Source of the DNA: Parasitella parasitica NRRL 2501 | Taxonomy: Eukaryota > Fungi > Mucoromycota | Length of the DNA: 64,000 nucleotides | Assembly (NCBI GenBank): GCA_025201805.1 | Contig: MU619267.1 | Span: 1-64,000, forward strand | Direction of reading: 5' to 3' | Part shown: in pieces, positions 23,873 to 33,532 of the stretch | Position numbering within the stretch: position 1 is the first letter of the stretch | Layout of the letters: each line of letters opens with the position of its first letter | Translations under genes and position numbers: made by a program | Notes under the pieces: model-generated | What the model was told of the DNA's origin: nothing | What the model saw: only the letters and a program-made list of their open reading frames with translations | Databases searched by the model: none

Positions 23873-25419
23873 TTACATGATAATGCAATCTTCCTGAGAC
23901 ATACTCTTCTTCTCAGTAGAAATCTTTTGCTCGGTTGATTTGCCCTGGATTTTTTGTATAGCACGTTTATCGCCATTTTCAGCAGCTTTTTTGTACCATT
24001 CAGTCGCCTGGAAAGAGTCCTTTTGGCATCCAATGCCCACTTCGGAAAAGTAACCAACAGCATACTGGGCTTTCGGTAGCCCTTTATCAGCAGCACGCTT
24101 AGCCCAGATATATGCATTCTCATCCGATTGAGGCAAGATACCAGGAGAGCCAACAAGATACCAAGCTGTCAGTGCAAAGCAAGCGTCCTTATTCCCTGAC
24201 TCAGCTGCAATGGTATAATAATGAATAGAGAGCGCCGAGTCAGGTCGCAGATTGAGTTTGCCGTATTCGTACCATTCGCCCAACTTGAAGGCTGCGGCAC
24301 CATGACCCATTTCAGCGGCCTGATTCAACAAGACAATAGAGTATTCTAAATCTACAAAAATAACATTTGGTATGCCACTGATATGCAATAAAGCTAACTC
24401 GTAGATAGCATCTGGATATTCTGGTGTTGCTGCTTCGACTGAGAGATTAAGCCATTTAACAGCTTCTTTACTATTTTGTGAAACTCCAATCTCACCATTC
24501 ATGTAAGCCAAACCTAAGCGATACATGGAACCTGGATGGCCCAAAGAGGCCGCTTTTCTATAATATAAATATCAACATGTGATTCTGCAATAACCTCAAT
24601 AAACACATGATAGATGACCTACTTGTAGAATTGCACAGCTTTTGCACCATTCCGACGACATCCCAAGCCATACTCATAGCATTTACCAGCTCTTGGGTCA
24701 ATAATATTCAATATCAGCATTTCGCATATTCATTTATAAAATTTGACCCAACAAATTCAGCCGATATTACAAGCAATTTACCTGTCAGAAGCATCGGTAT
24801 GGAAATGCTTGGATGCTTGTACGTATAGAGAAAATGCTTTGTCCAAATCTGGCCTGCCTTTCTTATCCAATAGACCGTCGTCGAATAATTTTGCAAGGCT
24901 GTATTGAGCATTAGCATGTCCTTTCATTGATAGTTGTTTCAAAAGCTTCTCAGCCTCCGAAAGATATTGATGTTTACTTGTAGCCTCGCCATCTGGTAAT
25001 TGCTTTGCAGCCTCAATCATGAAAATAGCAAAATCACATTGGATATCAGGGTTATTGGTTTTTTGGGCATTTTCTCTATACATGTTAATTGTTTTTGCGT
25101 ACGATAAAAGCGAGGCGTCTCTTCCAGGCTTTAGGTGTGAATGATTTAACAGCTGCTCTGATTGAGGCGATGTTACACCATTATTAGTTGTACTGCTGCT
25201 TGACGATCTCGATGTGTTTGGAATAGAGCTAAATGAATCATGGCCAAATGAATCGTTGACTGATGAGCTTGCAAGTGACGAACTCGCGCTATGAGTGGAA
25301 GGGTTTGACGAAATTGTATCAGGAGAAAGAACTTGCCTGTTGCTTAGCAAAATGTCATTGGCAGGTCTTTTTAACATGATGGTTTCAATTGAAGCATTTG
25401 GAGATGTAATTTCTCCCAT
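23873..25419 (-). CDS. Sel1-repeat protein, chitin synthase activator Chs4/Skt5-like, 3 exons
   Basis: YRENAQKTNNPDIQCDFA, multiple Sel1 repeats, SIHYYTIAA, FALTAWYLVGSPGIL, GLPKAQYAVGYFSEVGIG, C-terminal CaaX CIIM. Confidence 0.9.
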
Positions 25420-25651: not shown

Positions 25652-26086
25652 ATGACTGATATTGCAGGATATGCTTATGGCTTGACAGTATTTGCTGGTG
25701 GCCTTGTCGGTTTCATCAAAGGTATATGTTACTGGACAATTGAAAATCGGTTATGAAAGCTAATCAGTTTCGCAACAAACAGCAAAAAGCATAATGTCTC
25801 TCTTGGCTGGTAGCTTATTCGGCATATTAGCCTGTTTAGGCGCATCTCAAGTATCAAAGAACCCTAAAAACGTTACTTTATCTTTGATTGTCAGCCTTAT
25901 ACTTTTATGCGTTATGGGTGGGCGTTTCTATCGTGGACGTAAATTCATGCCTGCTGGGCTCGTGACATTACTCAGGTATATATTAAATGATTCTGTGTCT
26001 TGCTGATTAAAAAAGTTATTAAAGAACGCATTTACGATAGTCTAATTATGGTGCTTCGTTACGCTACTCGTTTAATTTCGAAATAA
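25652..26086 (+). CDS. TMEM14-family small membrane protein, 3 exons
   Basis: MTDIAGYAYGLTVFAGGLVGFIK/AKSIMSLLAGSLFG...RFYRGRKFMPAGL. Confidence 0.88.
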
Positions 26087-26106: not shown

Positions 26107-27463
26107 CTACTCAAATGTCACTGCCCCTTCGACTGTATTGATGATAATTTTGCTTCCGTTGGGCGAGATAATATAAATGGAATCAGCTTTGTTTTCTGGT
26201 GATAAATCGAGGATATGTCCAGGTGGTAAAAACATCAAAAAATTGCGAATTAGCCATGGTTTTCCTTTGAATAATAGAGTAACACGTTCTAGCACTTGAG
26301 GGGTATTGATTCTAATAAAGAAAGATATGATGAATGTTTAATCGCGTAAATATGGATTAGTCGCTATACTTACTTTTCCGAACGAAAATCTGTCATGATT
26401 TCCAAAAATTTGCTGTATGTTTGCGGAGGCTCGTCCGTTTTGATTTGTTCTAAATAGCCAACAGCATCTTTCATCTCCACTGGCTTTGCCTCTACATGTT
26501 TGACCTCTAATTCTTCTTTCAGACTCTCCAAGGTAATTTCACCACTCAATATGGACGACAACATGTGCTGTTTATCTTTACCGAATAGACTCTCGATCAC
26601 GCGAAACACCTATTGATTTTCTTTTGAATATTTTTAATCACACAAAAATCAAAGCCGCAACTTACTTCCTCCAAATTTTTATCATCCTTGATCTTCAATG
26701 CTAACCGGGGCTGGATCGTCTGGTCTTTGATGGTTTGTTGCTCTCCTCGCAAAACCGTTCGTACCCACATTAGTAAATGCTGAGGCTCACCAAGCTTGTC
26801 AACCAATTTTGCCCACCCTGTTAGGATCAATGCCCGTTGAAGGTCGTCATTTTGGGCGAATTTTGCCAAAAGAGCACGTCTCCAAGCATCGATCTTTCTG
26901 TTGTCATGCCAGTCTTTTCGCGCTTCCTCGGAAATTGGTGATTTTTGTCTCAGTAGTCTAATTTGTGAGGCAGGTTGCTGGCTTGTGGGATCCCCAGAGT
27001 CCAAGTAGAGCTTGCTATAAATGTGTGGCGATTGCACGAATTTAGAAGCAGTTGAATAATGAACAACAGAGGCCCAAGCATGATCATCGATGTGTAATAA
27101 TACGAGTTGTGCTGTAGATTTAGTCGGCGAGCCAGCTATGGAATCACCAAGGTTCGTATCGCGCATATAGTCGTCAGAAAGAATACGGCGCCAATAAGGA
27201 TACTGAGAGCAAAGGTAATCGTAACTATTATTCATAATATCTGACATTGGACACTGTTCACCCGTCAAAGTACCTGGTTGTTTGTCATCTGCTTCGATGT
27301 CTAGCATGAAAACGGTGTCTTCTCGAAAATCTTGGGATATTCCACCGTAAGGTTCAGCAATGGATTCGGGCACAGGTGAGCCCACTTCTTCTTGGTCATC
27401 AACTATAAATTCGCTTGTAAATTGACTTGTGGTAGAAGTTATCGCTGATGAATTATTGGTCAT
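26107..27463 (-). CDS. NADAR (YbiA-like) domain + C-terminal PAH (Sin3-type) domain protein, 3 exons, about 412 aa
   Basis: Exon 1: WASVVHYSTASKF ... DW ... RALLAKFAQNDDLQRALILTGWAKLVD ... LLMWVR. Exons 2-3: MKDAVGYLEQIK..PQTYSKFLEIMTDFRSEKINTPQVLERVTLLFKGKPWLIRNFLMFLPPG. Introns 26665-26610 and 26373-26312 are GT-AG and keep the frame. Confidence 0.8.
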
Positions 27464-32599: not shown

Positions 32600-33250
32600 A
32601 CCTTGGCATTCAAGATGTTGCCTCCGCTCCGCTTCCAATGTGGTATAGTTTTCCGATAAAATAGAGTTTTTTATCTTGGTACTGGTATGATTCTTCATAG
32701 TTGTCTTGTAGTAATAACGGTCGAAAGTGTTTGTCTTCAAACTCCAATTGCGTGTATTTTGACATTGAAAATGTCAAATCCCTTTTCAACTGCTTTTGTT
32801 CTGGCAACAGACCTGATTGAATGCGCCTTGAAGACCTCTGTGTCAACACCTGCTTTTTCAATGATTCTTTTGATCCATCCAGATATGGCTGCTGGCCTGG
32901 TTGATCTTGTCTTCTCGGTATTGTTTATGTACGACAGGAACAGGGTATGGCCATTTGGTAGCCCTGCTTTGATGCTTCTTGTTTTCCTCATAAATAATTG
33001 CATTGTCCTAACTGGACAAATCGATTCATCATGCATCTTTCCTAGTATTGACATCTTGACCTGTGCTTCTTTTGGCTCTCTGAAAAACAACCGGACAGCC
33101 TCGAATTTTCCCTCTTCCATTATAAATCCATTGTCTTGGTGTTTCAAACAACTCACATTTGAAGTTGGTCTAGCTATCGTAGTCAAGTACAATGTAATGA
33201 TCGTTTTGTTTTGTGATTCTTTTAGTGAAAGCTCTTCCTTCTTCCTCCAA
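32600..33250 (-). mobile_element. DIRS-type retrotransposon tyrosine recombinase remnant
   Basis: IARPTSNV, REPKEAQVK, CPVRT, ISGWIK..AGVD..FKAHSIRS, then a frameshift to KTNTFDRYYYK, giving the R-K-HxxR-H/W-Y set. Confidence 0.85.
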
Positions 33251-33369
33251 TTCTTCTTATTATGGCTCATCAGTAGATCTGTATCCGATATTTTCAACCG
33301 GCTTTTCTTTGATATAACCACTTTCTTTCGTCTTTTTTCTTTAAAAGACTCCTGAATAAGAGTTTGTCC

Positions 33370-33532
33370 TGCTATAATTACTAAAACAACAAAGAAACCT
33401 CGAAAGCAGCTTTGCATGAACTTTTTTGATAAAGGAATGGCCGCTAAAAACATCTGCCAAAAGTATAAATTAGCTAATAGTACTGTACGTGAAATTTTCG
33501 AAAGATTTAAGAAAGAGGATCGTATTCATTAA
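33370..33532 (+). mobile_element. Transposase N-terminal HTH fragment (Tc1/IS630-like)
   Basis: RKQLCMNFFDKGMAAKNICQKYKLANSTVREIFERFKKEDRI*. Confidence 0.5.

Follow-up and report, generated by a model that had tools for sequence, protein, structure and literature searches.

The N-terminal module of the gene analysed here resembles known NADAR proteins. AdfN, the product of gene 30.3 of phage T4, stands alone and is an experimentally active ADP-ribosylglycohydrolase, of which the E36A and K43A mutants are dead (bioRxiv 10.1101/2024.07.11.602962). Escherichia coli YbiA and the NADAR of Phytophthora nicotianae (PnNADAR) are single-domain hydrolases, while the DarG1-type antitoxins (BC4488) are bacterial, belong to DarT1 operons and possess, besides a catalytic Glu and Lys, an N-terminal extension that is basic and binds DNA. 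What eukaryotic NADARs do physiologically is, according to the literature, unknown (PMC11125620). Here we describe a gene on the minus strand (27463..26107) of a 64,000-nucleotide stretch of Parasitella parasitica NRRL 2501 (contig MU619267.1, positions 1 to 64,000; the whole stretch is hereafter called the window), in which a NADAR-like domain is joined to one PAH domain of the Sin3 type. Its three exons total 1239 nt and encode 412 amino acids (Table 1), and their coordinates and phases bear out the frame-preserving GT-AG gene model of the initial annotation. It is a genuine, selectively maintained spliced gene of this Mucor-like fungus and an undescribed, ancient combination of known kinds of domain, whose product may be an inactive NADAR scaffold tethered to a transcription-factor docking module.

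All searches with the window were run exon by exon, and full-length analyses were made on a deposited orthologue (P0003) and on a cDNA-like locus (L001). Exon 3 alone matched the Pfam PAH profile PF02671 with 24.1 bits, above the cut-off of 21.3, and a scan of the fungus's own genome agreed. The end of exon 2 covers profile positions 1-16 and the start of exon 3 positions 18-45, the split codon being position 17; because the two pieces meet at this shared codon, intron 2 must interrupt a single PAH domain, which is not expected by chance. A word-based search with exon 1 returned 34 relatives, all from Mucorales, nine of which were full-length models with both Pfam domains, and cluster look-ups added Mucor lusitanicus, M. 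plumbeus, M. ambiguus, M. fragilis, M. bainieri and M. velutinosus. Fused models occur in these species and in M. circinelloides and M. flavus within Mucor, and also in Pilaira, Benjaminiella, Blakeslea, Choanephora, Thamnidium, Umbelopsis and Bifiguratus, so that at least 15 species of Mucorales are represented in addition to the last two genera. The junction, EE followed across the splice site by V-F/L-R-V-I-E-G/S-L-F-G-K-D, is kept in every fused model that was aligned.

The introns are poorer in G+C (27-29%) than the exons (38-44%), and retention of intron 1 would lead to a stop after 22 codons. Exon 2 is directly preceded by an in-frame TAG and has its first in-frame ATG at codon 16, yet its codons 1-15 are conserved across Mucorales and must therefore be read from the upstream exon. 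Compared with the M. plumbeus and M. circinelloides loci, the exons are 75-86% identical with in-frame gaps only (78-83% at the nucleotide level for exon 1), whereas the introns are 39-58% identical and contain indels, their GT..AG ends and phase being retained; exon 3 is 97% identical to the orthologue P0003. The ratio of nonsynonymous to synonymous substitution rates (dN/dS) lies between 0.03 and 0.14 across all exons, with values of 0.06-0.09 for exon 1, 0.07 for the NADAR-like part, about 0.03-0.08 for exon 2 and about 0.08 for the first 44 codons of exon 2, which include the 15 that precede the ATG. All exons are thus under strong purifying selection, and these ratios, together with intact reading frames in all species, rule out a pseudogene or decaying gene. 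Two Logan contigs of about 1.5 kb from unrelated runs of a relative (SRR5829908 and SRR5215434), with both ends within about 30 nt of each other, each carry an uninterrupted 391-residue open reading frame (ORF) with NADAR and PAH; they resemble assembled mRNA, and we call them transcript-like.

By fold and sequence, the N-terminal module is a member of the AdfN-like short-loop NADAR subgroup. Exon 1 matched the Pfam NADAR profile PF08719 with an E value of 5.3e-8 and 33.7 bits over profile positions 31-122 of 163; in the precomputed table the orthologues carry a PF08719 flag, and the Umbelopsis member (P0058) reaches 40.8 bits. The profile comparison suggested at the outset was therefore positive for PAH, and for NADAR it gave a near miss. 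The fold was tested on the AlphaFold model of P0003, a protein 82% identical to that of the window, in which residues 45-243 have a predicted local distance difference test (pLDDT) of 80-91. The best structural matches were E. coli YbiA over the whole chain (2b3w; VIA Z 12.7, 144 aligned residues, root-mean-square deviation 2.9) and the P. nicotianae NADAR with ADP-ribose (8bau; VIA Z 10.8, 136 aligned residues), Foldseek agreeing at a probability of 1.00, so that superposition on NADAR-ADP-ribose complexes, which had also been proposed, recovered the NADAR fold. A YbiA-type NADAR was likewise the only sequence-level PDB match of the module (E 7e-9 with the family profile). In contrast to this likeness of fold, identity to the two structures is 17-24%. 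Three features of YbiA are not found as such in the window protein, namely its Glu (E48), its D130/W133 loop and the Glu of its last strand, and the window protein moreover has two modules. An ESM Atlas look-up of P0003 gave no usable match.

An exhaustive profile search returned 1531 proteins at E <= 0.001. The eight at <=1e-30 were all members of the NADAR-PAH family and were separated by a gap from the next matches, at 1e-28 and weaker. Among the best 150 of the 1531, the only proteins outside Mucorales that also carry PAH were those of Umbelopsis vinacea (P0058, 427 aa) and Bifiguratus adelaidae (P0060). The DarG1-type NADARs, which share the fold and an Asp on the last strand at the position of D222, were not close to the fused clade in this search. 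The nearest non-fused relatives come from metagenomes and are proteins of 170-200 residues or C-terminal domains of larger proteins, some of them linked to OTU. They share with the window protein the N-terminal motif P-G...G-E...W-R-x-x-L-S-N, connect the last strand to the final helix by a short link, and usually carry His on the last strand; several also match Pfam Phage_30_3.

T4 gp30.3 (AdfN), for which the sequence was taken from the annotated T4 record, aligns with this short-loop form, as do the window protein and about 150 of its nearest relatives. The initial annotation had taken the collapse of the LVE-x-x-x-D-x-x-WG...GxNxLG segment to LVDKLGEPQH as an apparent loss of catalytic residues. 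The short segment is indeed present, but it is shortened relative to YbiA only; since AdfN is active and also has the short loop, the missing D-x-x-WG segment is a trait of the subgroup and not decay, and loop collapse as proof of inactivity is thereby ruled out. AdfN and the other NADARs with His on the last strand resemble the window protein in fold, in the short loop without D-x-x-WG...G-x-N-x-LG and in the LSN-type, (V)EHY, KF and AKF-QN motifs. The window protein differs from AdfN in having Val in place of E36 and Asp in place of the last-strand His, a loop shorter by about 5 residues (as also in comparison with its nearest relatives), an N-terminal insertion of about 35 residues, an acidic N-terminus and the C-terminal PAH. 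A tblastn search of phage genomes with a gp30.3-like relative gave no match.

Alignments with YbiA and the T4 protein place V134 of the window protein at YbiA E48 and AdfN E36 (PnNADAR E43), K141, the phosphate-binding Lys of the KF motif, at YbiA K55 and AdfN K43 (PnNADAR K50), W185 at YbiA W89 and D222 at YbiA E125. The Glu is present in 136 of the 164 nearest non-fused relatives, and the corresponding column in the fused clade holds V in 40 members, I in 6, D in 3, E in 3, Q in 2 and T in 1. Glu occurs in Umbelopsis, Bifiguratus and one metagenomic member, Asp in Apophysomyces and Backusella, Gln in Phycomyces and Spinellus, and Val or Ile in the remaining Mucorales. The phosphate-binding column, on the other hand, is K in 52 of the 56 fused members (R in 3), and 33 of the 38 positions that are conserved in at least 75% of the non-fused relatives are kept in the window, including the His, the Tyr and this Lys. 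The five that changed are A58, L66, L123, L152 and the catalytic Glu, and only the last has a known catalytic role. The last-strand column holds D, S, T, N or K among the fused proteins, as against H, Y, Q, K or E among the nearest relatives; given this variability, D222 is unlikely to compensate for the lost Glu. Of the acidic residues initially thought to have been lost, it is the one of the EHY motif, here VHY, that is gone, and an acidic residue remains on the last strand, in a variable column.

In the E. coli C7 NADAR, the mutants E88A, E88Q, K95A, D171A and D171N give no rescue in vivo, and in vitro E88Q shows no activity (PMC11543638). Because the Glu is essential in AdfN and, in vivo, in the C7 NADAR, and is Val here, a pseudo-enzyme, as first conjectured for this locus, is the most likely reading, one that the retention of most of the conserved positions also favours. 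A retained scaffold with a lost catalytic Glu would be the pattern expected of a dead enzyme that has kept its binding function.

The distribution of these states also bears on the age of the fusion. Among the proteins searched, the NADAR-PAH1 fusion is found in Mucoromycotina only. It is old, being present in Mucorales, Umbelopsis and Bifiguratus, with early-branching members that retain the catalytic Glu, and this residue was lost in a lineage-specific manner after the fusion arose. A single origin of the fused clade is likely. The FastTree phylogeny of the NADAR region groups the fused proteins, but six non-fused sequences on long branches separate Umbelopsis from the other members (support 0.775); a cleanly monophyletic fused clade was therefore not borne out.

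The PAH module suggests a more precise origin than its Pfam assignment, since it is specifically of the Sin3 PAH1 type and seems to have been copied together with an intron and a beta-strand tail. P0003 matched yeast Sin3 at residues 213-315, that is PAH1 and the segment that follows, with a domain E value of 1.7e-19, as against 8e-4 for PAH2, and it also matched the PAH1 structures of mouse Sin3A and Sin3B. The predicted structure is a four-helix bundle with a small beta-sheet tail (pLDDT 85-92), the tail aligning to yeast Sin3 residues ~285-315. Comparison with PAH1 of mouse Sin3A (2rmr) gave a template modelling score of 0.80, an identity of 49-53% and a VIA Z of 10.4 (10-11 overall); over Sin3 PAH1 domains of yeast (~213-315) and mouse (2rmr), identity ranges from 45 to 53%. 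The genome has four Sin3 loci (contigs C17, C21, C45 and C8; loci L003-L010) with three PAH domains each, and the PAH1 of those on C21, C45 and C8, unlike that on C17, carries an intron exactly where intron 2 lies in the window gene, behind DFKSQ or DFRSE. The likeness to PAH1 and the common intron position are best explained by a partial duplication of the Sin3 PAH1 region at the DNA level.

Beyond PAH1 the resemblance to Sin3 ends. The window protein has one PAH and stops 35 residues after it, without PAH2, PAH3, the histone deacetylase (HDAC)-interaction domain or HCR, and so would provide no scaffold for Rpd3/HDAC. Helices 3-4 are family-specific as well, reading GKPWLIRNFLMFLPPGH where Sin3 PAH1 has GHPxLIxGFNxFLPxGY. 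The NADAR and PAH modules are separated by a disordered linker of about 70 residues. It contains a conserved helix, F-x-x-I-x-x-L-F, with a loose likeness to the PAH1-binding motif FXXLVXLL (PMC1557813). When docking of this helix in cis into the PAH cleft was considered, its pLDDT was about 55 in an AlphaFold model of linker plus PAH and below 40 in the full-length model.

What could such a protein do? We tentatively favour, at a probability of roughly 45%, a catalytically dead NADAR scaffold attached to a PAH1 docking module; at transcription factors that bind PAH1, the protein would be an adaptor or a competitor. The NADAR module of Mucor would no longer hydrolyse N-glycosidic ADP-ribose bonds and would serve for binding instead, its conserved surface perhaps still recognising a ligand akin to ADP-ribose. 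The PAH1 module would dock the amphipathic helices by which transcription factors on DNA usually recruit Sin3, and the protein would act at these Sin3-PAH1 clients as an adaptor or competitor and not as a co-repressor, a distinction that follows from the missing HDAC-interaction domain. We infer the catalytic inactivity, the ligand binding, the PAH1 clients and the effect on transcription.

A number of observations weigh against this proposal. The NADAR score of exon 1 lies just under the gathering score of 35.1. The full-length model of P0003 has a predicted template modelling score of 0.51 with linker pLDDT below 50, and does not predict the domain arrangement. We know of no PAH1 client in Mucorales. 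Within the fused clade neither the last-strand residue nor the GRK-like phosphate loop is constant, making ADP-ribose binding uncertain, and the presence of K141 and the acidic D222 leaves room for residual or altered activity. The C7 NADAR mutant E88A keeps most of its activity in vitro (PMC11543638). Finally, Phycomyces blakesleeanus is annotated with two separate genes (models of 301 and 85 aa) in place of one fused gene.

The initial annotation preferred a more specific role, that of a true ADP-ribose reader, whose dead pocket would bind ADP-ribose or an ADP-ribosylated base or protein and couple this mark to PAH1-binding transcription factors. The selective loss of the Glu from an otherwise preserved scaffold and pocket is the classic signature of a pseudo-enzyme reader, the Gln of Phycomyces resembles a substrate-trap mutant (PMC11543638), and the genome has one PARP locus and one macro-domain locus, meaning that ADP-ribosylation exists in the organism. 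We nevertheless consider such a reader somewhat unlikely, as the phosphate loop equivalent to G78/R79 reads LLRQK and differs from one orthologue to another, the short-loop subgroup lacks the contacts that W133 and D130 provide in the YbiA-type loop, and no DarT-like DNA ADP-ribosyltransferase was detected in the genome, in a search that had no positive control.

The chief rival, likewise unlikely, is a still active N-glycosidase or ADP-ribosylhydrolase with a re-arranged site (K141, D222 and H135), which PAH1 would target to transcription-factor-bound chromatin, there to erase base ADP-ribosylation or another N-ribosyl adduct. The essential Lys K141 and H135, Y136 and W185 are all kept, D222 stands at the catalytic Asp position of BC4488/DarT1-type NADARs, and the in-vitro defect of C7 E88A is minor (both PMC11543638). 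The Glu of Umbelopsis, Bifiguratus and the metagenomic member makes it probable that the ancestral fusion was an enzyme, and the NADAR domain is under strong selection; no second NADAR-like locus was detected in the 32.8-Mb assembly. On the other side of the balance, the Glu is essential in the closest characterised relative, T4 AdfN, and in vivo in the C7 NADAR; Val would be unable to hydrogen-bond the distal ribose; the column of D222 is S, T, N or K elsewhere in the fused clade, making compensation unlikely; and the residue in Phycomyces and Spinellus is Gln, a replacement by which the C7 NADAR is inactivated.

A bolder scheme, which we regard as decidedly improbable, would make of the NADAR-PAH1 protein a chromatin-targeted module of base ADP-ribosylation: an active eraser in Umbelopsis and Bifiguratus, brought to DNA by PAH1-binding transcription factors, and a dead reader or trap in Mucorales that would couple the mark to Sin3 repression or make it compete with it. 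If true, it would be the first eukaryotic link of NADAR biology to transcriptional co-repressor docking.

The weakest alternative, a NADAR-only gene and a small PAH-only gene wrongly merged by gene predictors, is highly improbable, for although Phycomyces has two models, its exon 2 opens with an ATG right behind the acceptor and many ORF-based calls end within intron 1, such truncations are expected of prokaryote-style gene callers that meet an intron, an in-frame 164-nt GT..AG intron joins ...QEE to MLRLMEGVFGKE in Phycomyces itself with donor, acceptor and phase conserved, the intergenic space in the window would be 56 nt only, the codons between the TAG and the first ATG of exon 2 are selected, and the transcript-like contigs carry the fused ORF uninterrupted. 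The single spliced gene initially read from this locus, with a NADAR-like domain joined to one Sin3-type PAH, is confirmed by the fused models, the conserved junction and the selection on all exons.

The architecture has been deposited in public databases for many Mucoromycotina as hypothetical or 'NADAR domain-containing' proteins. A literature search combining NADAR with Sin3, PAH or Mucorales, and including accessions and run identifiers, found no paper describing the fusion; the early statement that this architecture lacked a description thus holds for the literature, but not for the databases, where fused models with both Pfam domains were already present. The family gives a eukaryotic NADAR a concrete, lineage-wide context, in which it is hard-wired to a transcription-factor docking domain. 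The natural series from the Glu-bearing proteins of Umbelopsis and Bifiguratus to the Glu-less ones of Mucorales offers a test of the conversion of an enzyme to a pseudo-enzyme, and a free-standing Sin3 PAH1 module is rare and could naturally compete with Sin3 recruitment. Orthologues are present in the genetically tractable M. lusitanicus and M. circinelloides, and the value of the locus is that of a lead.

Table 1. Features of the NADAR-PAH gene and of its neighbours in the window
Feature	Coordinates	Strand	Description
Exon 1	26666..27463	-	266 codons, ends in phase 0; acidic low-complexity N-terminus, NADAR-like domain, start of linker
NADAR (YbiA-like) fold	26735..27331	-	~residues 45-243; V134, H135, Y136, K141, W185, D222
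Intron 1	26610..26665	-	56 nt, GTAAGT..TAG, 27% GC
Exon 2	26374..26609	-	78 codons + 2 nt; conserved linker helix VFRVIESLFGKD, variable linker, first half of PAH
Intron 2	26312..26373	-	62 nt, GTAAGT..TAG, 29% GC; cuts the PAH domain after DFRSE
Exon 3	26107..26311	-	second half of the PAH1-type domain, conserved beta-strand tail, TAG stop at 26109-26107
TMEM14-family gene	25652..26006	+	convergent neighbour, not part of the gene; Pfam Tmemb_14 E 2.2e-14
Sel1-repeat gene	23873-25419	-	beyond the TMEM14-family gene; E 7e-37

The block formed by the NADAR-PAH, TMEM14 and Sel1 genes is syntenic in the window, M. plumbeus, M. circinelloides and Phycomyces, and the common TMEM14 and Sel1 neighbours indicate that the four loci are orthologous. 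Upstream of the NADAR-PAH gene lies an ORF-poor stretch with a 238-residue ORF (32740-33453, minus strand) that has a weak match to tyrosine recombinases (Pfam Phage_integrase E 0.0016, below cut-off) and could be the remnant of a Crypton/DIRS-like element.

Several deposited records of the family and its relatives deserve a remark. Some Mucor annotations include a second isoform of 336-337 aa (P0037, P0041 and P0044), with a shorter N-terminus and the PAH kept. The M. velutinosus orthologue (P0043, XP_064687450.1) is named 'S-adenosylmethionine transporter', which looks like an annotation error. The Bifiguratus adelaidae protein (P0060, OZJ05974.1, 1380 aa) has Sin1/AVO1 domains (CRIM, UBL and PH) in addition to NADAR and PAH, and probably reflects two adjoining genes that the predictor ran together, with no true fusion of three parts. 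Several large proteins among the nearest non-fused relatives, such as the metagenomic P0059 and P0069 (1337 and 625 aa), combine NADAR with an OTU-type cysteine protease, and one cluster includes a Tara Oceans sequence.

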